Shown in pieces: positions 16,576 to 50,113 of a stretch of DNA of 64,000 nt. This DNA is from Phaeosaccion multiseriatum. Its lineage: Eukaryota; Protista; Ochrophyta, other classes. Every line of letters starts with the position of its first letter. The first letter of the stretch is position 1. The position numbers were made by a program, and so were the translations under genes. The DNA lies in NCBI GenBank assembly GCA_965112735.1, contig OZ218961.1, positions 806,001-870,000 on the forward strand, written 5' to 3'. The notes beneath the pieces were generated by a model. It did not search any database. It had not been told where the DNA came from and was given only the letters and a program-made list of their open reading frames with translations.

Positions 16576-16688
16576 AGCGAGGGCGTATTTAATAGGAGGC
16601 ACCTAAGAAACTGAAAGTGCGTGTGTGTGCGCGTGAAGGGAGAGAAAAAGAGACAAGCAGGTGCACGTGTTGTACTACTCAAACACAG

Positions 16689-19055
16689 ATGGCGTTCCAA
16701 TCATCTATCTTTACAGTGATGTCGTTGAGGAGAGTGGCGAGAACCTGCTACTCCTCCTGCATCGGTAGGAGAACAGGACTTGGAGCAGAACGGCGCGCCG
16801 ACTCCACTCTCCACCAGCAGAAGCCGCTGCAGCAGCAATGGTCCAGCTTCTCCACTAAAGGGGGTGACAAGTCGAGGCAGAGGCGGATCCTGAAGGAGAT
16901 CCAAGCTCTGGGCAGGAGCAAGGATTGGAAGAGGGTTGCACCTACTCTGGAGAGCGCACGGCGCGAGGGCCTGACGCCCAATCTGTTTTGTATGAATGCT
17001 GCTATTTCCGCACTTGGGAAGTGCGGGCGGTGGAAGGGCGCACTGGCCCTTCTGGCAGAGATGAAGAAGGGAGGAATCGCACCTGACGAAATCAGCTACA
17101 ACGCCACCATCAACGCATGCGCCAAGGCCAAGCAACAGCTGGAGGCATTGAGGTTGTTGAGGGAGATGAAGGCAGGAGGAGTCGCCCCTGACGTAGTCAG
17201 TTACAACAGCACCATTGATTCATGCGCCAAGGCCAACCAACACGTGGAGGCATTGAGGCTATTGCGGGAGATGAAGGCAGAAGGAATCCATCCCAATGTA
17301 ATGAGCTACAACGCCACGATTAATGCATGCGCCAAGGCCAAGCAACACGTGGAGGCACTGAGGTTGTTGAGGGAGATGAAGACAGAAGGATTCCGTCCCA
17401 ATGTAAGGAGCTACACGACCACCATTGACGCATGCGCCAAGGCCAAGCAACACGTGGAGGCATTGAGGCTATTGAGGGAGATGAAGAAGGAAGGAATCCA
17501 TCCCGATGTACGATCCTACAACGCCACCATTGACGCATGCTCCAAGGCCAACGAACACGTGGAGGCATTGAGGCTACTGAGGGAGATGAAGAAGGAAGGA
17601 ATCCATCCCGATGTACGATCCTACACCAGCACCATTGACGCATGCGCCAAGGCCAACAAACACGTGGAGGCATTGAGGCTATTGAGGGAGATGAAGGAGG
17701 AAGGAATCCATCCCAATGTAAGGAGCTACAACGCCACCATCAGCGCATGCGCCAAGGCCAAGCAACACTTGGAGGCATTAAGGTTGTTGAGGGAGATGAA
17801 GAAGGGAGGAATCGCACCTGACGTAATCAGCTACAACGCCACCATCAACGCATGCGCCAAGGCCAAGCAACAGGTGGAGGCATTGAGGCTATTGAGGGAG
17901 ATGAAGGCAGAAGGAATCCATCCCAATGTAAGGAGCTACACGACCACCATTGACGCATGCGCCAAGGCCGACCAACACTTGGAGGCATTGAGGTTGTTGA
18001 GGGAGATGAAGGAGGAAGGAATCGCTCCTGACGTAATCAGCTACAACTCCGCCATTGACGCATGCACCAAGGCCAAGCAACACGTGGAGGCACTGGGGTT
18101 ATTGAGGGAGATGAAGTCACAAGGAGTCACTCCTGATGTAATCAGCTACAACGCGACCATTGACGCATGCGCCAAGGCCGACCAACACGTGGAGGCATTG
18201 AGGCTATTGAGGGAGATGAAGGAGGAAGGAATCCATCCCAATGTAAGGAGCTACAACGCCACCATCAGCGCATGCGCCAAGGCCAAGCAACATGTGGAGG
18301 CATTGAGGCTGTTCAATGAGATGAAGGAGGAAGGAATCGCTCCTGACGTAATCAGCTACAACACCACCATTGACGCATGCGCCAAGGCCAAGCATCATGT
18401 GGAGGCACTGGGGCTATTGCAGGAGATGAAGGCAGAAGGAATCCATCCCGATGTATGGAGCTACACGACCACCATTGACGCATGCGCCAAGGCCAAGCAA
18501 CACTTGGAGGCATTAAGGTTGTTGAGGGAGATGAAGGAGGAAGGAATTGCTCCTGACGTAATCAGCTACAACTCCGCCATTGACGCATGCGCCAAGGCCA
18601 AGCAACACGTGGAGGCACTGGGGTTATTGAGGGGGATGAAGTCACAAGGAGTCACTCCTGACGTAATCAGCTACAACGCGACCATTGACGCGTGCGCCAA
18701 GGCCGACCAACACGTGGAGGCACTGAGGTTGTTGACGGAGATGAAGGAGGAAGGAATCGCTCCTAACGAAAGTACCTACAACGCCACCATTGGTGCCTTG
18801 GAGGAGGGTGGACAAGAGGACGCTGCTGACGAGCTGTACGTAGAGGCCGTGTCGGCAGGGATTTATCCACACTGGTCGGAGCCTGGGAGGTACGGGGGCT
18901 TGCGCGCTTGCACCAGGGTGGGAACAAGCAAGGCAGCGCTTCGGTGCGTGCCCTCAGAGGTGAAGGCGGGGGCTGGGATCGAAGTTGTCACAGGGCTAGG
19001 TCGAGGCAGTGAGGACGGCATCAGCGTTCTCAAGCCCGTGGTGTTGAGTGAGTGA
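16689..19055 (+). CDS. Pentatricopeptide-repeat (P-class PPR) protein, 18 repeats, organelle-type presequence, degenerate or truncated Smr-like C-terminus
   Basis: 35-aa units VxSY(N/T)xxIxACAKAxQHxEALRLLREMKxEGIxP(D/N), 105 bp each, at 16983-18872. The N-terminus is R/S-rich and poor in acidic residues. The tail SKAALRC..IEVVTGLGRGS..VLKPVV resembles the Smr domain of PPR-SMR proteins. No intron seen. Confidence 0.92.
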   Translation: MAFQSSIFTVMSLRRVARTCYSSCIGRRTGLGAERRADSTLHQQKPLQQQWSSFSTKGGDKSRQRRILKEIQALGRSKDWKRVAPTLESARREGLTPNLFCMNAAISALGKCGRWKGALALLAEMKKGGIAPDEISYNATINACAKAKQQLEALRLLREMKAGGVAPDVVSYNSTIDSCAKANQHVEALRLLREMKAEGIHPNVMSYNATINACAKAKQHVEALRLLREMKTEGFRPNVRSYTTTIDACAKAKQHVEALRLLREMKKEGIHPDVRSYNATIDACSKANEHVEALRLLREMKKEGIHPDVRSYTSTIDACAKANKHVEALRLLREMKEEGIHPNVRSYNATISACAKAKQHLEALRLLREMKKGGIAPDVISYNATINACAKAKQQVEALRLLREMKAEGIHPNVRSYTTTIDACAKADQHLEALRLLREMKEEGIAPDVISYNSAIDACTKAKQHVEALGLLREMKSQGVTPDVISYNATIDACAKADQHVEALRLLREMKEEGIHPNVRSYNATISACAKAKQHVEALRLFNEMKEEGIAPDVISYNTTIDACAKAKHHVEALGLLQEMKAEGIHPDVWSYTTTIDACAKAKQHLEALRLLREMKEEGIAPDVISYNSAIDACAKAKQHVEALGLLRGMKSQGVTPDVISYNATIDACAKADQHVEALRLLTEMKEEGIAPNESTYNATIGALEEGGQEDAADELYVEAVSAGIYPHWSEPGRYGGLRACTRVGTSKAALRCVPSEVKAGAGIEVVTGLGRGSEDGISVLKPVVLSE

Positions 19056-33691: not shown

Positions 33692-34870
33692 ATGGAAGCG
33701 CCCAGTCGAAGAGAAATGCGAGCTTACCTCCCCACCATTGCGGAGGCGGAGGAAGCACAAGGACCCAAAGACGCACGGTGGTGGCCTTCCCTGCGGCTGG
33801 CGCTCCTCCTTCTCCTTTTTGTGGTGGTAGCCTCGCTGGGCTTGTTGGAGGACGTTACGCAGGGAAGCCTTTGGAGTGTGGGGGTTGGCTTCTTCTCCGG
33901 GAAGAGCGAGCAGCAGCAGAGTGCGAAAGAAGAAGGGAGGCGGCAATCAGTAGGTCTGAGGTGGAGAGCAGCAGCAGCAGCAGCGGCGTCTGGAGACGAG
34001 CCCTCCTCAACAGGAAGGAGCCGGAGGAGGGGGCTGCGAGACTCAACCTCACTGGCTGCCGAGGAGTTGACCTCCCCCCAACGATATGAGAGTAAGGCAT
34101 CCCTCAGCCTCGAGGGGGAGGGTTTGAAGCGAGGGAAACAGCATCCGGACGAAAGGAGGGCCTACCAGGAGCAGAACGAGGCGGAGAAAGTGCTGCAAGA
34201 GGTCCAGCGAGAAAAGCAGCAGCGGCAGGAGGAGGAGGAAGAAGAGGAGGAGGAAGAGGAGGAGGAAGAAGAGTCACCTCCTATAATAGTGGTGGGGCTT
34301 CCAAAGTGCGGTACGAGCTCTCTCGCCGCTGCTGTGCAATGCTCAGGGCGAAAATCGTCTCATTGGATGTGCGGTCGAGCAACGTGCGGGAACTGCATTC
34401 ACAACAATGTCCTGGCGGGGAAGCCGCCCTTGGAGGGCTGCGGGCATGAAGACTTTTTCGCCCAGATTGACCGAGATGGGGACAATGGGAAGCTCTGCTA
34501 TTTTCCGCAGATCTCAGCCCTCGAGGAGATTCATCAAGAGTTCCCCACCGCAACCTTTGTACTCAACCAACGCCCTGCCGAGAGATGGGTCAGCAGCGTC
34601 GATCGATGGGGGAACATGCGCCAGCGCCTAATCGATTGCGATATCCCGGGCTTTCCAGCCGGCGTGGGGAGCGAGGACTTAGAAATGGTGGAGTTTTTCA
34701 ACAGACACAAGCGCTTCATACGGGACTTTGTGGACGCTCACCCTTCGCACTTGCTGGTAGAGGTGGATATCGAGTCGGAAACCGCCGCGACCGTGCTGCA
34801 CAATGAGCTGGGCATTCCTCGGAGCTGCTGGGGGCAGATGAACGTAGGCAAACCTCGGTCTCGGTTGTAG
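33692..34870 (+). CDS. Type II membrane P-loop sulfotransferase-family protein (Sulfotransfer_4-like), intronless
   Basis: Single N-terminal TM (LALLLLLFVVVASLGLL) and a stem. PAPS-binding-type IIVVGLPKCGTSSL; FPTATFVLNQRPAERWVSSV; HKRFIRDFVDAHPSHLLVEVDI. Confidence 0.75.
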   Translation: MEAPSRREMRAYLPTIAEAEEAQGPKDARWWPSLRLALLLLLFVVVASLGLLEDVTQGSLWSVGVGFFSGKSEQQQSAKEEGRRQSVGLRWRAAAAAAASGDEPSSTGRSRRRGLRDSTSLAAEELTSPQRYESKASLSLEGEGLKRGKQHPDERRAYQEQNEAEKVLQEVQREKQQRQEEEEEEEEEEEEEEESPPIIVVGLPKCGTSSLAAAVQCSGRKSSHWMCGRATCGNCIHNNVLAGKPPLEGCGHEDFFAQIDRDGDNGKLCYFPQISALEEIHQEFPTATFVLNQRPAERWVSSVDRWGNMRQRLIDCDIPGFPAGVGSEDLEMVEFFNRHKRFIRDFVDAHPSHLLVEVDIESETAATVLHNELGIPRSCWGQMNVGKPRSRL

Positions 34871-39146: not shown

Positions 39147-40977
39147 GTTGGGCTATAGCCCCCCACAGAGCTACTCCCTTCCTCCTTCCCTCACTCCCTC
39201 CCTCCCTCTCCCTCCCTCCCTCACAATTGTACCGCCACTTCCAACTCCCCCCTGCAAAGGTCGGTAGTCTACCGAGCCAGTGCCCTGCGGTGTAAAATGA
39301 GCTCGAGTGCCGCTACCCTCTTGGGCAGGGCACGGTAGCTGTCTGACAGCGAAAGGCTTATGATTGAGGAGGAAGAGCCGAGGAAGGAGCAGAGCAGAGA
39401 GAGGGAAAGAGAGAGAAAGAGTTGGGGTGGGAGGAGGTTGATCGAGACGAAAAAGAAAAAGAGGAGAGGAGGGTTTGTAAATACGCAAAGAAAAGAGGAA
39501 GAAGCCTCTTGTGTGATGAGGAAGGTAGTATACGAGTGATGAGGAAGGTAGTATACGAGTGACATGTAACCCATTTAGAAGCCCTTTCCCACAGAGGTTT
39601 GGCTGCGAGGCAGAGGCTTGTAAGGAGACTTAATTTGCTAGGCTGGGCGAGAGAGAGACGGACGTAAGGGAACAAATGACCTACGCCATCTTCCTCGAAG
39701 AACGCCTCACGGTCTACCTCTTCCACCCTGCAGCAAGACAAAAGCTTTGCACCCACCTGTCAATGGGAGACGTCCTTCTTCTAGTGATCAGTGTTGTAGC
39801 TTGCTCGCTGCTGCTGCTCTGGACTGAGCTGCTGCTGGCCTGCTGCTGCTCCTGCTGCTGTTAAAGGCCCTAAAACCTAGCTCTAACTCCTAGTATACCG
39901 CTACTTCTTAATGCTGTGCCTGCTCCTCTCTGTCGTCCCGAAGCTCCCCCTTCCCCTCCCAACGGCCGTGTAACGTGTAACGAAGATCCAGTTGGAATTT
40001 GCGTTTGCCGGATATTTTATTGACTGCTTGGCACGCACGCCCGCACGCCGCACGCACCCACACAGACTGCCGCATTCCCCCAGTACGATACCCATCCGCT
40101 CCCATTCCTCTCCTCCCCTCTTTCCCCTCCTCCGCCCCCAAGCATGTGGAAAATCACATGCGGTCGAGAGAGCGAAAGGGCTTGGCCTCCTTCCATGGCC
40201 GAGAGGGAGGCCCTCCGTCAAAGACTTACTATGGCTCCCTCAGGCTGACTTTGGCTGACCAAGGGCTTGAGGCTGAGGGGGGGTTGTATGGATGCCGTCG
40301 TAGAAGAGACGGTGGTCCTACTCGTAGCGACGACCTCCAGAAGGGGCACTGCGTGCGGCAGCAGCAGCACTTGGTGATACTGCAGATACCAAAGCGGCCA
40401 GAACAAGGGCAAGGGCACAGTCATAGTATTGTTCAGTGGCCATAGTGGCGAGAGCAGCTGGAGGAGGAGAAGGAGAAAGGGAAGGAGAGGCTGTGGGGAG
40501 AGAGGAAGGCAACACCCACCACCATCACGTTCGACCCTATATTTTCGGGGGGCACACCGTAATCTTGTCCAGGGTCGATCACGTAGGCAGGAGCCGCAGC
40601 AGTCATAACAGAGGACGGGGACCAAAGAAGACACTTCACCTACCTCTAGCTTCCTTTTCGTGTAATCTCCTTCTGTGATGATGCAACTGAGCGTAGTCGT
40701 GGACTGAGGGCCTCGCAGGGCTGTTTGATGGGGCCTCCAACTGCCAAAAAAAGTTCCCGCCTAATCCTGTGTGAGTTTCAGTTCCCGAGGCCCGCGAATT
40801 CTCTTACCAGGCAGCAGCAACTTAATAGCGCAGCGTTAGAGACCTACAGCGCCTGCATGGCCCACACACGCATCAACCCTACACACAAGTAGCTCTGCCG
40901 CTGGGTTGGCTGCTTTCTCTTGTGGCCGAGTGAGGCCACCACTGGCTGGCAAAAAGTCATTCCGCGAGAAACAAACG

Positions 40978-43900
40978 ATGAGTACAGGTGTGGAAGAAGG
41001 GGGAGAAAAACATATAGGGGAGATGGAGGAAACCGGTAAAAATCACAGCAGCAGCAGCAGCAGTAGTAGCAGCAGTAAAAGCAGGACAGCTGACGAGGTT
41101 GATGGTGGTGCCGCCCTGCTGCTGAAGCCAGCAGCAGCAGCAGCTCTCCACACCTTGCTCGGCGGGAGGGCGCAGGAGGTTGTGGACGAGCTCGGGGACA
41201 AGCCTTTCGCCTTTTGGTACGATGGAGAAGGCAACGAGGCGGAGAGGTATAGCTTCAAGCGTATGTGGGATGAGGTAAGCTGTGAGCTGAGAGATGCCAG
41301 CGACGAGCCAAACCAGCATCATGTCATTGCGGGAGAGTGTGGTGCGTGGCCTTTTGTTAAGGTGTTGCCAATTTCCTGCAACGTTAGCTGCCTGGGGGAG
41401 GATCTTTCTTTGTCCCACATCCTTCTTTCTTCTTTATTTACTTCCTCCTCCTCCTCCCCTCTACCCGCTCCACTCCGCCTTCCCTCCACCATTGCCCAGG
41501 CGGGAAAGATCTCCTACCTCCTCCGCGAGGAGTGGCGAGTGCCCAAGGGAGCCACGGTGGTGCTGTGCTACGAGCCGAGCCTGCACTTCTTCGCCGCCTT
41601 CCTGGGCTGCCTGAGGGCGGGCGTGGTGGCGGTGATGGTGTACCCGCCTGCTCCTCCCCTGTCAAAGTCCCTGCCCAAGATGAGCAAGATCGTGGCGGAC
41701 TGCGGGCCCCTGCTGTGCCTCACCGACTCCAAGATTGCAGCTCTGTGCAAAGAGGACAAAGCCAACCAACTCTCTGACTCGCGCAAGCTGTGGCCTGAGG
41801 ACCTTGACTTCAACGCCACCGATGGAGGGCTGTTGCAAAACCTCTTCGCCTCCTTCTCCTCCTCCTCGTCGGCGAGGAGCTTTGACGAGGCGAACGTGAC
41901 CGAGGAGGACCTGGCCTTCCTGCAGTACACCAGCGGCTCCACCGGCGACCCCAAGGGCGTCATGGTGACCTTCGGTGCACTCATGGCCAACGTGTACCTC
42001 ATCAGCTCGCACCCCGCCACGGGAATGTACAACCTTCTGTCGGCCGATCCTGCCTCAGACCAGCAGGAAGAGACGAGAGGCTCTTCCTCCTCAGACCAGC
42101 ATGAGGCGAGCGAGGGGAGTGACGAAAGCAGACCACTCAGTCTCACGAAAGCTGCGCAAACCAAGTTGAGATACATACCGACGACGGGCTTCTCGTGGTT
42201 GCCCCAGTATCATGTGAGTTTGAGTTAAGAGGGCAGGGGCGTGAGAGAGGGGGTTGGAGGGTAGGTGTGGAGGGTAAGAGCCAAACGAGGGGAGTGGAGG
42301 CAACGGAGGAGAAGGAGGAACATCAAGCGCGAGGGAGGGAAGGAAGAAGCAGAGCTCGGTCGTCTTGCCTTTGGTGCTCACGTGCGCCTCCACTTCTGCC
42401 CTGCCTGCTCTCTGTACTTGTCAATGTTGGCATCTGGTGCCATCTCACACAGGACATGGGCCTCGTACTCGGCCTCCTCACTCCGTTCCTGACGGGCATG
42501 ACCATGCACTACATGTCCCCCGTGAGCTTCATTAAGCGGCCCCTGCTCTGGCTGGAGCTCATCTCTCGGCACCGCGTGGAGTGGTCCATCGCCCCCGACT
42601 TCGCCTACGCTCTCTGCGCCCGCTACATGGCCAAGGTGCGCGGCACTCGTAAGGAGCCCAAGCTGGATCTGTCCTGCGTGGTCACGCTGACGTCGGGAGC
42701 CGAGCCCATTCGAGCGGAGACGGTGAAGCGGTTCCAAGAGGCCTTCCTGGGCAGCGGTCTGTGGCCAGGGTGAGTGAGTGAGTGAGTGAGTGAGTGAGCG
42801 AGTGAGTGAGTGAGTGTGAGTGAGTGAGTGAGTGAGTGAGTGAGTGAGTGAGTGAGTGAGTGAGTGAGTGAGTGAGTGAGTGAGTGAGTGAGTGATCAAG
42901 TGAGTGAGTGATCAAGTGAGTGAGTGAGTGAGTGAGTGAGTGCGTGAGTGAGTGAATGAGTGAGTGAGTGAATGAGTGAGTGAGTGAGTGAGTGAGTGAG
43001 TGAGTGAATGAGTAAGTGAATGGGTGAGTGAATGAGTGAGTGAGTGAGTGAGTGAGTGAGTGAATGAGTGAGTGAATGAGTGAGTGAGTGAGTGAGTGAG
43101 TGAGTGAGTGAGTGAGTGAGTGAGTGAGTGAGCGAGTGAGTGAGTGATCAAGTGAGTAAGCGAGTGAGTGAGTGAGTGAGTGGGTGAGCGAGTGCATGAG
43201 TGAGTGAGTGAGCGAGTACGTGAGCGAGCGAGTGCGTGAGTATGTGAGTGAGCGAGCGAGTACGTGAGTATGTGAGTGAGCGAGCGAGTACGTGAGTATG
43301 TGAGTGAGTATGTGAGTGAGTGGATCCGTTTCAGGACAGGACAGGGCAGGATGAGGCACCAACCAGCGCAGCGACGGCCTTCCTGCTCGCTCTCCATTTC
43401 CGGCGGGTGCTTTGGTCTCTAACCTCGTGCTTGCACTCTCCTGTGCCCCTGTCTCTCCGTGACCGGCACACTGTTAGGTGGTTCTCGGCTGCGTACGGGC
43501 TCGCCGAACACGTGGTCTTAGGTAAGAGCCCGTCCCTGGACGAGCCGAATCGACGATGCGGATGAGGGCTTATTATGACGAGCGGTAGTGATCAGTTCAA
43601 AGCCTCATCCACCCCTCGTCCTCTCGCCCTCCCCCCCTCCTCTCCATCGCTACTCTTCTCCCCAGTGTCGTGGGCCAATGTCATCGCTGGGTCGTCCTCC
43701 CATCCCGAGCTCACCAGCGTCGGCTCCGTGGTCGGGAGAGCGGACGTTATGGACATTCGTATTGTCGATCCTGACACCAAGGTCGAGGTCAGCGAGGCAG
43801 CTATGGAGGGGGAGATCTGGATCTCCTCGCCCTCCGTCGCCGCCGGATACTGGGGCAAGCCCGAGCTGTCACAGGAAGTGTTCCGAGCGCGACTCACTCT

Positions 43901-46900
43901 CCCAGGGGGGGACGGGGGGGGCAACGGCGGCTCGTCTCCTCACGAGTACCTGCGGACAGGCGACGTGGGGTTTGTGGAGGAGGGGCTGCTGTACATCTGC
44001 GGCCGCATCAAGGACCTCATCATCTTCAACGGGGTCAACCACTACCCGCAGGACATCGAGTTCGCCGTGCAAGAGGCCTCTGACGCCGTTCGGGAGGGGC
44101 AGGTGGCAGCCTTCTCCTCTGACGAGACGGGAGGGGACGGCGTGCTGGAGGTGGTGTTCGAGATCCACCAGGAGCGAGAGAGCGAGGCCCGGGCAGTAAC
44201 GGAGGCCGCCCACGTGGCAGTGTCGTCGTCTGTGGGCCTTAATGCGGCCAAAATGGTGGCCGTCAAGCAGAAGACCATCCCCAGGACCACGAGCGGCAAG
44301 ATCCGACGGCGGGCGACGCGGCGAGCGCTCCACTCCGACAAGCTTCACACCATACACGAGCTGCTCAGCGAGGAGGACAGCCACCACCCTGCGATCACAG
44401 ATGGAGGTGGACAGCCACGCACCATTCACGAGCTTACGAAGGACGGTGCCGCGTGTGGGGATGGGGATGGGGTGGAGAACGATACCTCTCCATCCGGGTT
44501 GGTAGTCGCGTCTCTTCAGAAGCAGGATGAGGGGCAGGAGCAGGAGGAACAGGAGCAGGAGGAACAGGAGGAACAGGAGCAGGAGCAGGAGGAACAGGAG
44601 CAGGAGCAGGAGCAGGAACAGGAAAAGGGGCAGGCGCAGGAGCAGAAGCAGGTGTGACAAGGCAATGGAGGCGACTTGAAGAGAGAGAGAGGCCATTATG
44701 TGAAGGATAGCTTCTTGCCGTCCCTCTCGCTTCGACCTATCAATTGTGTGAAGGATAGCTCCTTGGCTAAAGCCCCCCTCTCCTTCTGCCTTTTTTGTGT
44801 CCGTTTCCGTCCCCACGTGGATGCATAACACTGCAGGACCCTCCTGTTCAAACAAGAAGAAGAGTGAGCTTCGAAGACGAGGTCCGGCGAGGGTTGGAAG
44901 GAGGCGTGTACGTGAGCGCATCAGTCGCCCTGCACGAGACAGCAGCAGCAGGAGCAGCAGCAGCAGGAGGAGGAGGAGGAGGAGGAGGAGGCTCCCCTCC
45001 ACCCTCCGCAAAAGAAGGGGTGGACTCTGCGTCGGAAGCTTCTTCTGCTTCGGATGCTTCTCCGTCAGAAGCTTCAGCGTCGGATGCTTCTGCGTCGGAA
45101 GCTTCTTCTTCGTCGGACGCTTCTCCGTTAGAGCCTTCTGCGACAGATGCTTCTGCATCAGACGCTTCAGACGCTTCTGCGCAGGAAGCTTCTTCGTCAG
45201 ATGCTTTTGCGCCGGAAACGGCTTCGTCGGATGCTTCTGTGCAAGAAGCTTCTTCCTCAGCTCCTTCGTCAAATGCTTCTCCGTTGGATGCTGAAGACTT
45301 GGACTCTGAGCTGCTGCGTGAGGAGTTAGCGAGTTTATCGCCGGAGGGACGTCAAGCAGTGGTGGTAGCTCAGGTCAAGCAGGCTCTGATGGAGTGCACT
45401 GGCGAGGATAGAGTCAGTCGAGCCGATGCATCGACCCTTCTCAGTGAGGTTGGTGTGGACCCGCTGATCTGGATGGAGATGGTCAAACGCCTCTCTGCAA
45501 GGGGCTACCGGCTACCTCCTTCTCCGCTGATGGAGCGTCGCACCCCGGGGCAGATCGCGCAAGACTTGCTTGGGGTTTTGTTCCCCTCCAACGAGGCCGT
45601 AGCCACCGCCGGTGGGGCAGTAGCTGGGGCGGCCGAGATGGCAGCCGATGGCGACGTCGCATCCAGTCGAGAATCCAGCAATCGCAACGGCGTGGATGGT
45701 GGTGTAGGAGACGCGGACAAAGGGCCCCTCGTGGGGAGTGAGGACACGGACAGCGAGGAGGATGCCGAAGGAAGTGATGGCCAGGGGTGCTTCTTTTCAT
45801 CCTGTTCTGCCATTCCCAGCTTCTGCATGGGGGTGGTGGCGATGGTGTACAGCTCACTGGCGGTCGCATTGTCTGCCTTCCCCGGTGTCATTGTGCTGGA
45901 GTCCATCCTGTTGGACAAGTGGGGTAGGTGGATCACTTTGGCGTGTGTGCCTCTCGCCTTCCTCTCGTGGGCGGTTCTGCTCATGGTGGTGGTGACGATG
46001 ACCAAGTGGGCGGTCATCGGCAGGTACCGGGCGGGGTCTTATCCCATCAATAGCGGGTACTACTTCCGCTGGCTCTTTGTGGATCGCGTGACGGACTTTG
46101 CGTTGCAGCGACTGCCGCTGCATGGGAGTGTGGTGTGGACATGGTGGCTTCGCGCACTCGGAGCAAAGATTGGGCATGGGTGTCGCCTGCATTCGGTGTC
46201 CGTATCGGAGTTCGACTTGGTGCACTTGGGGCCGCAGTCCACTGTCGAAGAGTTTTGTCGGTTTCGCCCCGCGGTGATTGAGGACCGCCATCTCCTACTT
46301 CGAAAAATCACAGTTGGCGCAGACTGTGTGGTTGGTGCTTCGTCTCAAGTGTTTGGGGGCGCAACCATGGGCGACATGGTGCGGTTGCGACCGTCCACGG
46401 CAGTCAGCGGGCGGCGTGGAGCCCTGGCCCCGCACACAGAGTGGAGCGGCTCTCCGGCAACGCTTTGCAACAACCTCGACAGTTACAGGGATGGCCCTAA
46501 CAACCGCGACAGTTACAGGGATGGCCCTCCTTCTTGGTTTCCGGCAACGACACGGACAGGCGGCAGCTTTGCTTCTTCGAGAGGGCGGGATCGGGATGAG
46601 CTCGAGAGTCTGAGGAGTAGCGAGGAGTTGCTACACAGCGATGGGTTGGGAAGCGCTTTTGACTGTGCTGGGGCTCTGCCTGGCGGCACTGTGCATGGTG
46701 GCCGCCAGCATTCCCGCGTACGTTCTCTGGGGGGCGGTGAGTGAGGAGTGGGGTTTGTTGGGAACAAGCGTACCCGACTATCACTCTCTCGACATGGGCT
46801 ACCTCGTCGCTGCATTGATCGTCACCTTCGATCTTGCGCTGGTGCCGCTCCTTCCCATTGCGCTTGGTGAGGGTTTCGTGGGCTCTCTTGCTCCATTGAA

Positions 46901-49599
46901 GGAGCTGACGACGGAGCAGTACCTGGTGAAACCGATGCTGATTCTGGCCTTGGCCTATTCAGTGGCAGGCGTGCACATGAGCCTCATGAGTCTTGTTCTG
47001 AAGCACTACCTTGGCGGCCTTCGTACTGATGCAGCGGGCGGCAGCACTGGCAAGAGGCAAGTTGTCGACCTGGTGATCCGACTCGTGTACCCTCGATACA
47101 TGTCGCTGCACGCTGGAGGGCCTGGCATGGTCCTTTGGCTTCGTGCTATGGGCGCTCGCATCGCATGGACTGCCAAGGTCATTGCCCCCTCCCCTTCTTC
47201 CCCTGTGCTGGACCCGGCCTTGCTCGAACTTGGGCCACATTCCGTGGCGCTGGGGAACTTTGCTAGTCTAGCGGAAGGCTACGCAGGGAGGGTCAAGATG
47301 GGAGCCTGCGCCGTGACCACACCGGGCTCCTGTCTCTGTCCCGGGTCACAGCTTGGCGACGCTTCAATGGTGGGCCCGCTGACCTCCTGCCCCTCCTCCT
47401 CCGCGTCGCTGTCGGCGGCCAAGGTGCGATCGAGAACCCTTCGCTATGGTAGCCTGGTGGCACCGATCAGGCTTCACACGCAATATGACGAGAAGCGGCA
47501 GCACCAGCACCAGCAGCAGCACCAGCAGCAGCAGCAGCGGCATCAGCAGCGCAATCACAACGATGATAGGCTTGGTTCTTGCTTAGCTGGAGCAGGGGCT
47601 GCGATGTACTCTGTGTTGAGTCCTGTTGCCGTCCTCATGCTTCGTTTCACCACCCTGACCGGCACTCTTCTCTTGGCAACGTGGTCTGTGGCGTTCCTGG
47701 GAAGGTGGCCGGCTCTCGCCCTGTCGCCGGTGGTCATCTTGTCGCTCAGCATGGCCATGGCGGCTTGGTCGGTGGTCGTGAAGTGGTGCATCGTGGGGCG
47801 AGGAGCAGCCGCAGGAAGTTACGCCGGCGTCGGAAGCGTGGCGTTCCACACGAACTTGTTCAGTGCCGCAGTTACCCAAGCGGCTCGAGAGAGTGGCGTC
47901 AACAGCCTTGCGGGCACAGCAGCGCACACCTTGTGGCTTCGTGCCATGGGGGCTCGAGTCGGCAAGGGTGCCGTGGTGCTCGCCACAGATGGCCTGTCCG
48001 GATTCGACTTGATCCACTTGGGGGCAGGGAGCGTTGTGGATAGGGACTGCGTGATCGATGCCCGAAGGATTGTGCATGTGGAAGGAGGAAAGGCGGCCGT
48101 TGAAGGTCACAGAAGCGAGGAAGCCGCCGACGATGACGAAGACGAGGAGGAGGAGGGTGAGAGTGGTCCACCGCGAAGCATCACCACCGCTTCTTGCAGC
48201 ATTCTCTTTGAGAAAGTCATCGTCGGCCGAAGGGTGACGATAGGGGCGGGATCCGTCGTTATGGCTTCAACATCGCTGTCTCGCAATTCTAGCGTGTCCC
48301 CGGGAACTCTCATCGGTCCCGGGCTGCAACAGATCGACGATGTGCTACTTGAAGGTGTGCCCGCTGTGCGCATGTCACGCGGAGCTGATGGAGGAGCGTT
48401 CGAAGCAGACCTTGTGGGGAAGAAAGAAGCGCCAGATCTGTGGGTGGACGCGTGCCTGCCCAGCGATGTCACCACCACGATAAGAGGCATGGCGAGGGCA
48501 TCCTCTGTATATGTGCGGTGGAGTGCATCAGCAGCGGAGCTGACCACAGCGGGCTCGAATTGTACAGTCGAGTCTCCTATTCCGACGGTGGAGTCGATTC
48601 TACTCACAGGGGCCACCGGCTTTGTGGGTAGGCATCTGCTCGTTGACTTGCTGCAAGCGCACCCGCACTCGTTTGTGTATTGTCTTGTACGGGGCTCGGA
48701 CGACAACGACGGGTTACGGCGTGTGATGCTGGCCTTGAAGGAGTCCCAGCTCACTCTACGATCGTCACAAAGGGCCCGATTGGTGGTACACAGGGGCGAT
48801 GTGACATCACCAAGCCTCGGCCTCGCGGAGGAAGAGTACCAGGCCCTGGCCGGCACGGTGACACGCATCTACCACGCCGCCAGCCTCCGTAGCTTCACCA
48901 AGAACTATGCGCAATTGTTTGGGGCGAACGTATTGGGCACCCTTCATCTGCTAAGTTTCGCGGCGACTCACTCTCTCAAAGCCCTGCATATGGTTTCCTC
49001 GACTGCCGTCCTTACGCCGGACATGGTCAACGAGGAGGGGAGAATCCCTACAGACGCACCCTTGGGAGACATGACCGCGCTGCCTGCCACAGGACGAGCA
49101 ATTGGCGACCAGCTCGGGTACTACCAAAGCAAGGTAATTTGGGTGCCAGTGGATGTGGATGTGGCTGCTGCTGCTGCTGCTGCTTCGGTCGTTCTGTGTG
49201 TGCCCTCCTTCCTCCGACGAGTGTTACCCATCCGTCCATTCACCTCTTTTAACTCCTCCCCTTTTCCCCCTCTTTTCGCCCTCGTCTGCCTCCGTCTGCT
49301 GTCATGTACTGCCATCCACCTCCTACCCATCTCCTGCCCCCTCCTCTTGTCTCTCCTCCTTGCCATTCACTCCAGTGGGTAGCAGAGAGGCTTGTCACAC
49401 AAGCGGGGCAGGAGGGTCTCGACGTTAGTGTGTACAGAGTGCCTCTCGTGGTGGCAGGGCATCGATCCACTGGGCTTGCCCCCCGGCACGGTGATGTCTT
49501 TCTGTCCATGATTGAGCACGCAAGCAAGCACGGGGAGGCCCTCGCGCACACTCTCAACGCCACTCCTGTTGACATGGTGTCACAGGCCATCGTCATGCT

Positions 49600-49641
<42 letters not shown>

Positions 49642-50113
49642 TGAGGACGGAGCACCAACACCTGCACCAACAGCAGTGACGACTCGGACCTCCGTGTTCA
49701 ACATGGCCTGTGACACCTTCAACATTACGCCGGAAACCCTCCAGCTGGCCGTGGAGAGTGCCGGTCAAGTGAGACCTACCCCTCTGCCTACGGAGGCCTT
49801 TCTGGACTCGGCACACACGCCTCCTCTCGCGCTGCGCTCTTTCCTCTCCTCGCAGTCCTGCTGCTGTTTCTTTGACGGCTTTTCCTGCGCCGTGCACGAC
49901 GTGTACCTACCCAGTCCTCCCGCGGAGGAGTGCTTTCGACAGATTTTGAGTGGCCTGTGTGGGCAGCAAGGTCAGGGGCAGGGGCAGCAAGCTTACCTGC
50001 GCCACAACCACCACCACTGCGCTCCCGTGCCGAGCTGGAACGGGGTGAGTTTGGTCCTGACCATGATGGGAGCTCAACAGCAGAGAGAGCAGAGGGAGAA
50101 GGCATTTCTATAG
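40978..50113 (+). CDS. NRPS-like membrane enzyme: fatty acyl-AMP ligase (FAAL) - carrier domain (Ser absent) - 3x Pls/PosA-type TM + left-handed beta-helix modules - terminal NAD(P)-dependent thioester reductase
   Basis: Exons 40978-41274, 41500-42213, 42453-42769, 43478-43521, 43666-44651, 44837-~46500/46640, 46641-49133, 49376-50113. A domain: AFLQYTSGSTGDPKGV, SWLPQYH|DMGL, YGLAE, GEIWISSPSVAAGYW, YLRTGDVG, GRIKDLII.NG.NHYPQDIE, IPRTTSGKIRR. Carrier: LSEVGVDPL. Pls-type modules: KWAVIGRYRAG.YP..S.YYFRW and WLRA(L/M)GA(K/R)(I/V) x3. R domain: ILLTGATGFVG, GDVTSPSLGL, IYHAAS, NVLGT, GYYQSK|WVAE. Confidence 0.85.
42770..43320 (+). repeat. (GTGA)n intronic microsatellite starting at the splice donor
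   Basis: About 550 bp of GTGA/GTGAGT units directly from the exon end. Confidence 0.9.

Follow-up and report, generated by a model that had tools for sequence, protein, structure and literature searches.

What might an enzyme do that places the membrane modules of a poly-lysine synthetase between a fatty acid-activating domain and a terminal reductase? The question is raised by a locus in a 64,000-nucleotide stretch of Phaeosaccion multiseriatum DNA (GenBank assembly GCA_965112735.1, contig OZ218961.1, positions 806,001 to 870,000 of the forward strand), which we call the window. Based on hidden Markov models (HMMs), the gene at 40978-50113 (+) encodes, in order, a fatty acyl-AMP ligase (FAAL)-type adenylation (A) domain, a carrier (T) domain, three modules of the Pls/PosA type (C1 to C3), and a thioester reductase (R) domain. 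It is a real nuclear gene of a photosynthetic stramenopile alga, with about 2,411 codons in the predicted model, and its family numbers six genes in this genome, of which it is the smallest. For the family, we tentatively favor, with somewhat less than even confidence, a reading in which the cassette of carrier, Pls-type membrane domain, and reductase serves in chain release. For the window copy itself, such a role is doubtful.

Domain order and predicted gene model

A chain of long open frames runs along the + strand from 40.9 to 50.1 kb. Its parts, in order, are as follows.

40978..41274 (+): exon 1, start of the FAAL domain (ends ...RMWDE), from the first ATG of open reading frame (ORF) 40906-42228
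41275-41499 (+): intron 1, donor GAG/GTAAGC, acceptor CCCAG at 41499, phase 0
41500..42213 (+): exon 2, FAAL N-terminal subdomain with YTSGSTGDPKG (41926-41958) and SWLPQYH; PF00501, 1.2e-26
42214-42452 (+): intron 2, GTGAGT...CACAG, phase 0
42453..42769 (+): exon 3, FAAL core with APDFAY (42591-42608); PRK05850, 5e-22, and PRK09192, 2e-21
42770..43477 (+): intron 3, donor AGG/GTGAGT, acceptor GTTAG, phase 2
43478..43521 (+): exon 4, a micro-exon with YGLAE (43494-43508); a single in-phase GT-AG pair on each side
43522-43665 (+): intron 4, in-phase GT-AG
43666..44651 (+): exon 5, rest of the FAAL core and C-terminal subdomain (YLRTGD, GRIKDLII, SGKIRR) with a Gln/Glu-rich tail; PRK12476, 8e-46, and PRK05850, 9e-46
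44652-44836 (+): intron 5, donor CAG/GTGTGA at 44652, acceptor CTGCAG at 44836
44837..45370 (+): low-complexity Ser/Ala/Asp-rich linker between A domain and carrier, from the translation; tandem repeats at 45026-45267
45371..45562 (+): carrier (PP-binding); PF00550, 5.3e-05
45791..46481 (+): module C1, with two hydrophobic helices (45821-45994), WWLRALGAKIG (46142-46174), a beta-helix, and WSGSPA (46442-46459); TIGR02353, 1.5e-34, and hydropathy
46482..46638 (+): frame break between C1 and C2, a weak-donor intron or a frameshift; frame 1 must become frame 2
46639..47570 (+): module C2, with hydrophobic helices at 46656-46997, LWLRAMGARIA (47133-47165), and a Gln/His-rich linker; motifs and hydropathy
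47571..48440 (+): module C3, with helices at 47580-47780, LWLRAMGARVG (47931-47963), and an acidic insertion; TIGR02353, 1.1e-13, and Hexapep
48597..49133 (+): N-terminal part of the reductase, with TGATGFVG (48606-48629), VSSTAV (48993-49010), and YYQSK (49119-49133); TIGR01746, 7.3e-41, and PF07993, 9.4e-37
49134..49375 (+): reductase intron, AAG/GTAATT...CTCCAG/TGG, phase 0; splicing gives the canonical GYYQSK-WVAERL
49376..50113 (+): last exon, C-terminal part of the reductase, poly-Ser, and stop; TIGR01746, 6e-10, and PF07993, 1.4e-06

Good-consensus, in-phase GT-AG introns (41275-41499, 42214-42452, 42770-43477, 43522-43665, 44652-44836, and 49134-49375) link most of these pieces, and with the join at 46482-46638 included, a local frame check found the predicted model open over 2,411 codons with one terminal stop. 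The original prediction spoke of one spliced gene. That description holds where in-phase introns join the pieces, but the donor at the C1-C2 junction is unconvincing. Contigs from four public sequencing runs of one sample are colinear with the genome through the intron at 49134-49375 and contain no joints; these runs are therefore DNA and are uninformative on splicing or expression. The introns cluster in the A domain, as had been predicted: four or five lie within it or at its end, compared with one candidate in the Pls-like part and one in R.

Comparisons with homologues bear on several exon borders. The length of the micro-exon agrees with that in FAAL homologues (e.g., P0167, residues 302-346), positions 41164-41280 are 87% identical to the paralog on contig 10 (C10, described below), and DNA similarity to the same paralog ends at 49137 and restarts at 49372, on the two flanks of the reductase intron. 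Exon 2 possibly contains an optional in-frame intron around 42027-42170. Most of intron 3 is taken up by a (GTGA)n microsatellite with about 139 repeat units (42770-43322; Tandem Repeats Finder score, 749). The first unit of this repeat is the GTGAGT donor of the intron, and similar repeats occur in the C10 paralog. Repeats also make up coding low-complexity linkers at 44517-44652, 45026-45267, 47494-47550, and 49600-49641 (Gln/Glu-rich, Ser/Ala/Asp-rich, Gln/His-rich, and poly-Ser).

The A domain is of the FAAL type, as proposed. AMP-binding pieces lie in ORFs 40906-42228, 42195-42773, 43320-43565, and 43575-44657, and the best NCBIfam models are the FAALs PRK12476 (8e-46) and PRK05850 (9e-46), both near 1e-45, versus 2e-20 for the coenzyme A (CoA) ligase PRK06187 on the same piece. 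The closest solved structures are also FAALs (7r7e, FadD32, FadD23, and 3kxw), and the A-domain motifs are complete (YTSGSTGDPKG, APDFAY, YGLAE, YLRTGD, GRIKDLII, and SGKIRR). With the nonribosomal peptide synthetase (NRPS) amino acid adenylation model TIGR01733, the gene scores 59.6 bits against a cut-off of 317. The segment between the PRK05850 matches (positions 315-377) is about 16 residues short and spans two introns with predicted borders.

The C-terminal reductase was borne out as well. TGATGFVG and YYQSK are present, in agreement with the patterns T-G-x-T-G-F-x-G and S/T...Y-x-x-x-K, and TIGR01746 matches on both sides of the intron (7.3e-41 and 6e-10, or 140.6 and 38.9 bits with the two exons scored apart; cut-off, 213.35). 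PF07993 gives 127 bits against a cut-off of 20.1, and the last exon is 57% identical to the paralogs over 178 amino acids. Among solved structures, MxaA (4u7w), Mtb Nrp (4dqv), and carboxylic acid reductase (CAR) come closest, and judged from its motifs the domain looks competent. The CAR model NF041592 reaches 85 bits against a cut-off of 1300, and A, T, and R are not contiguous in this gene.

The Pls-type membrane domain and the reductase-bearing clade

To our knowledge, Pls-type terminal domains are known only as cationic amino acid polymerases of bacteria and fungi. The original prediction placed the middle region of the window gene with the C-terminal domain of Pls/PosA, and the homology is upheld by TIGR02353 (1.5e-34 on C1 and 1.1e-13 on C3). 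With the two ORFs scored separately, C1 reaches 119.5 bits and C3 50.4 bits, far below the curated cut-off of 423.1, and we regard the domain as a clear homologue of this family but not an equivalog. Three tandem beta-helix modules follow hydrophobic, membrane-helix pairs, and three copies of the predicted WLRAxGAxIG motif are present; the predicted helix pattern stands except in module 2, which shows three hydrophobic stretches rather than two. In module C3, DARRIVHVE (48057-48083) occupies the site of a His that is invariant in Pls proteins lacking R, and the acidic insertion comes after it.

We modeled the structure of the uninterrupted T-C1-C2-C3 part of a contig-15 paralog with AlphaFold, using a 30-row alignment. 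The model (pTM, 0.74) contains an acyl carrier protein (ACP) fold, three pairs of long helices, three beta-helices, and a disordered acidic insert in module 3. It agrees with the published AlphaFold/RoseTTAFold picture of PosA, in which six bent helices bear a pseudo-trimer of left-handed beta-helices (PMC10522769). Foldseek matched the model to hexapeptide acetyltransferases (serine, maltose, and galactoside) and to ACPs. Neither sequence searches nor Foldseek found a Pls-type membrane domain in the PDB, where the matches were only to hexapeptide acyltransferases and ACPs, and the ESM Atlas returned only uncharacterized hexapeptide clusters, mostly eukaryotic, with diatoms the commonest source.

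A comparison of 15 R-bearing cassettes with 14 R-less proteins (five actinobacterial Pls/PosA and nine fungal or protist) separated the two groups by residues in module 3. A Glu, an Asp, and a His are invariant there in 14/14 R-less proteins, with the His in the context ...Q-T-H-L-F or A-H-I-N, and they are absent in 15/15 R-bearing cassettes; the window gene has Gly, Ala, and Arg at these sites (columns 1600, 1608, and 1621 of alignment A1). The R-bearing clade has invariant polar residues of its own, which lie mostly in module 1, plus one Arg in module 2. Those of module 1 are a Ser (Gly in all R-less proteins), the Glu and Asp of S-E-F-D, the Glu of A-V-I-E, and S-G-R, and the window gene retains every clade-invariant polar residue. 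In a quick tree, 14 of the 15 R-bearing cassettes fell on one side of a branch with an SH-aLRT value of 100, the exception being a long-branched chytrid.

The genome assembly that we searched (67 Mb in 22 contigs) yielded 72 matches to TIGR02353 in more than 25 places by profile search. The carrier-C1-C2-C3-R cassette occurs at five loci besides the window, with 52-86% identity by domain. On contigs 15 (two copies), 13, and 2, it forms the C-terminus of giant type I polyketide synthases (PKSs) with ketosynthase (KS), acyltransferase (AT), dehydratase (DH), enoylreductase (ER), ketoreductase (KR), and ACP domains, and on contig 10 it ends a FAAL-flavin oxidase-like-ACP-KS line whose FAAL is 74-90% identical to that of the window. 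In the tree, the window cassette groups with the C10 copy (SH-aLRT, 96), and the four PKS copies cluster tightly together. The window gene encodes about 2,400 residues, compared with more than 4,000 in the PKS paralogs, and unlike those paralogs and C10 it carries the cassette directly after its A domain, with KS, AT, and other PKS domains absent. A later fusion or acquisition had been suggested in the original prediction; that the cassette is shared with the PKS paralogs fits module shuffling.

Protein identity to the paralogs is 84-86% in C1, and C2 is 71% identical to that of C10. Among the six paralogs, dS in C1 (45810-46463) is 0.36-0.48, versus 0.7-1.5 in T, C2, C3, and R; this likeness in C1 hints at gene conversion or at an especially strong constraint on module 1. 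The R-less Pls-type genes of this genome comprise about 15 intronless genes of the NRPS-type A-T-PlsC order and several PKS-PlsC genes. In the intronless type, an ORF of about 880 codons with three Pls modules comes after an amino acid adenylation ORF; examples lie on contig 1 (1174000-1183999), contig 4 (2026000-2035999), and contig 3 (388000-397999).

Outside this genome, the architecture is rare. In a representative library of 1.84 billion proteins, the best identity was 33% over all matched stretches, and about 10 clusters pair Pls-like modules with R. These relatives include dinoflagellate proteins of the order C-A-T-PlsC-R (Symbiodinium CAE7780214.1, Alexandrium, and Prorocentrum/Polarella CAK0807952.1) and a chytrid protein of the order A-T-PlsC-R. 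EukProt transcripts and metagenome contigs also carry the cassette, in lines such as FAAL-ACP-KS-AT-monooxygenase-DH-...-PlsC-R (P0153) and the minimal A-T-PlsC-R (P0152). A search of 5.8 billion proteins with the uninterrupted cassette of a paralog reached no more than 24% identity, with 79% of the query covered, and no FAAL-T-PlsC-R protein was found elsewhere in the 1.84- and 5.8-billion-protein searches. The C2-C3 part as a query retrieved only five actinobacterial Pls/PosA proteins. The outside cassette proteins are all unannotated or named “unknown function.” One preprint mentions the domain in a eukaryote (Cladocopium), again as “unknown function” (bioRxiv 10.64898/2026.09.08.749829), and our full-text literature searches found no description of the cassette. 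The original prediction did not recognize this architecture as described, and its rarity and the lack of a description found agree with that, but the gene is no one-off in a genome that holds a family of six. A protein of 2306 aa at NCBI labeled as from the land plant Ambrosia artemisiifolia (P0220) combines DAO, catalase, amine-oxidase, carrier, hexapeptide, and DIP2-like AMP-binding domains; it recalls the C10 paralog, and may be an overlooked relative or a contaminating sequence.

The window copy and readings of the cassette

Two features set the window copy apart from the rest of the family: Pro in place of the carrier Ser, and a frame break that separates C1 from C2. Its carrier domain is present as predicted (PF00550, 23.8 bits against a cut-off of 20.8; residues 193-256 of ORF 44795-46744), but the conserved Ser of G-x-D-S-L to which phosphopantetheine is attached is replaced by Pro (CCG, 45461-45463; context, SEVGVDPLIW). 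In alignment A2, GVDPL of the window stands against GIDSL or GVDSL in the five paralogs, GM(T/S)SL in dinoflagellates, and GGGSL in bacterial Pls. Contigs of the four read sets show 0 differences over 45004-45867, the Pro site included, and an HMM built from the carriers of paralogs and relatives found no second carrier in any + frame at 40-51 kb. Since Pro leaves no site for a phosphopantetheine arm, the A-to-T-to-(PlsC or R) thiotemplate route is blocked on this polypeptide, and the thiotemplate chemistry originally proposed for the gene fails at the canonical site of the carrier as written.

At the C1-C2 junction (46464-46659), a switch of frame is required between 46464 and 46640, where GTTACA-type sequences at 46482 or 46512 are the sole candidate donors, with the acceptor CACAG at 46638. 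A 30-bp tandem duplication spans 46469-46528 at the break. All five paralogs cross this linker as one ORF, unlike the window gene, and the read contigs show no indel at the junction.

Compared with the paralogs, dN/dS is 0.14-0.42 in every domain and 0.18-0.27 on C1-C3. Counting single-step changes with the C10 copy and two PKS copies as references, we assigned 52 nonsynonymous (N) and 105 synonymous (S) changes to the window lineage alone, versus 29 N and 89 S in the C10 lineage (Fisher test, p = 0.14). Of the window changes, 37 N and 84 S lie downstream of the frame break (C2 to R). The whole window gene, including the part behind the break, has been under purifying selection for most of its separate history, and any inactivation is therefore recent. 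Judged from its coding sequence, the window copy either was recently crippled or works without a carrier of its own, and its present activity is doubtful; it may be crippled, may borrow a carrier, or may act on free thioesters.

For the family, reductive release at the membrane is the best-supported reading: the R motifs are complete, and the domain resembles alcohol- or aldehyde-forming terminal reductases. At the membrane, the R domain would use NAD(P)H to convert the acyl or polyketide chain on the carrier into an aldehyde or alcohol, and the Pls-derived domain would anchor the enzyme and receive or pass on the lipid product. This domain is conserved and hence should have a function, but polymerization is probably not its role, given that Glu, Asp, and His, invariant among the R-less enzymes, have disappeared from the clade. 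With an even number of membrane helices, the carrier and R would share one side of the membrane, and an N-terminus without an obvious signal peptide (by eye) would suggest the cytosolic face. We infer both the chemistry and the membrane role of the cassette. Several points weigh against reductive release. No family member has a known substrate or product, and the window polypeptide, as written, cannot carry out carrier-bound thioester reduction. The expression and exon joins of the window gene are predicted, the public runs being genomic DNA, and its GTTACA-type junction donors differ from its other donors (GTAAGC, GTGAGT, GTAAGA, GTAATT, and GTGTGA). In addition, purifying selection on C1-C3 suggests that the Pls-like domain has a role that may be catalytic, and the presumed catalytic role of Glu, Asp, and His in Pls is itself based on conservation, not experiment.

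For the window copy, the chief alternative, which is unlikely on balance yet carries real weight, is a young pseudogene that arose by duplication from a C10-like ancestor, lost the oxidase-ACP-KS part and then the carrier Ser, and gained a frameshift between C1 and C2. The change from Ser to Pro at a universally conserved site, on which the read contigs agree, fits such a history, as do a frame break without a consensus donor where all paralogs have one ORF, the fact that no RNA run contains the locus, and a window branch that exceeds the C10 branch in length for both C1 and C2. What speaks for function is the excess of synonymous over nonsynonymous changes in the window lineage, overall and past the break, together with an 833-codon open frame, fully intact A- and R-domain motifs, and the retention of all Pls-like residues that are invariant in the clade. 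The same frame break could instead divide two genes, A-T-C1 with its stop at 46744 and C2-C3-R with its ATG at 46641, exactly at the start of the C2 helix. We consider this division highly improbable, as the three modules form one polypeptide in the five paralogs and in all distant relatives, and the three beta-helices pack as a pseudo-trimer both in the contig-15 model and in the PosA model (PMC10522769). Nearly as remote is a carrier-independent enzyme, in which A would release acyl-AMP or make acyl-CoA, R would reduce the free thioester, and the carrier would be a structural linker. PF07993 includes acyl-CoA reductases, 7eoz matches R, selection was kept despite the Pro, and with about 16 fewer residues between the PRK05850 matches than in the profile, a full FAAL-specific insertion is not demonstrated. 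This scheme is speculative, however; the best models and structures for the A domain are FAALs rather than CoA ligases, and the C10 paralog has the same short segment yet has Ser-bearing carriers.

The rivals that concern the Pls-derived domain turn on whether it still moves acyl groups. In the original prediction, the modules act at the membrane and pass fatty or hydroxy acyl groups, in a single transfer or repeatedly, to a hydroxyl or amine acceptor; its speculative products were polyester, wax ester, or algaenan-like material, with R giving the alcohol acceptor or an alternative release. Homology to the polymerizing domain of Pls/PosA (TIGR02353; PMC10522769), the hexapeptide acyltransferase fold, the dN/dS of 0.18-0.27 on C1-C3, and the concentration of clade-invariant polar residues in module 1 all favor it, and acyl transfer through those module 1 residues is possible. 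We nevertheless judge the proposal improbable: the module 3 Glu, Asp, and His invariant in the 14 R-less proteins are Gly, Ala, and Arg in the window and are gone throughout the R-bearing clade, which weakens polymerase and transferase readings alike, the donor would need a carrier that here has no Ser, and no product is known. Somewhat less improbable, though still a minority view, is a broader proposal in which the cassette is an unrecognized membrane chain-release machine of protist PKS, NRPS, and FAAL lines. Ser, Arg, Glu, and Asp of module 1 would replace the module 3 His, and the machine would insert, export, or couple the reduced long-chain product at the membrane, with wall or surface lipid polymers as one possible destination. 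Its minimal, fatty acid-primed form would be the window gene, still active through a carrier in trans or on a free thioester.

Surroundings of the gene and comparison with known systems

The neighbors of the window gene are ordinary eukaryotic genes unrelated to it and include RCC1, DnaJ-fn3, WW, ankyrin, Sulfotransfer_4, and SGF29-tudor genes. The Sulfotransfer_4 ORF (33692-34870, +; 5.6e-11) lies about 6 kb upstream, and a long ORF at 16617-19055 (+) bears the label “PPR repeat array” from the original prediction only. Light-harvesting proteins are encoded elsewhere in the genome at more than 50 loci, and one of them has its best named relatives in Chrysoparadoxa (54%), Tribonema, and brown algae. 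Near-identical intronless genes of this type form tandem arrays on contig 9 (474910-521083) and contig 15 (1683723-1700707), the former with more than 10 copies in two inverted blocks.

Returning to reductive release, the comparisons describe a distinct clade of Pls domains wired between carrier and reductase, which ends fatty acid-primed, polyketide, and peptide lines in several protist groups and points to an unstudied form of membrane release for hydrophobic chains. Of the natural test cases, the window gene would be the smallest. Its Ser-less carrier makes the C10 or PKS paralogs the safer experimental entry, and the window copy set against these paralogs offers a natural test of whether the cassette needs a carrier of its own.

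Each part of the gene has counterparts among known systems. Compared with FAAL loading domains (FadD32, FadD23, FadD28, and the cyanobacterial PKS FAAL 7r7e), which are its best HMM and structure matches, the A domain is alike in the APDFAY and YGLAE motifs and in its fusion to a carrier; it is about 16 residues shorter than PRK05850 where the FAAL-specific insertion sits. With Pls/PosA (A-T-C1C2C3), the gene shares a carrier followed by paired helices and three tandem beta-helices, with W-L-R-x-L-G-A-x-I-G in each module. It differs in having a FAAL-type A domain rather than one specific for cationic amino acids, in the reductase that follows the membrane domain, and in lacking both the module 3 Glu, Asp, and His and the carrier Ser. 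The dinoflagellate and metagenomic cassettes belong to the same clade and share the loss of Glu, Asp, and His in module 3, but they are only 24-38% identical to the window cassette, and most of them are primed by amino acid-type A domains and condensation domains. Finally, the logic of adenylation, carrier, and NAD(P)H-dependent thioester reductase is common to the window gene and to CAR/Lys2 (A-T-R), MxaA, and Mtb Nrp, whereas the window gene, compared with CAR/Lys2, has a membrane domain of about 900 residues between T and R.

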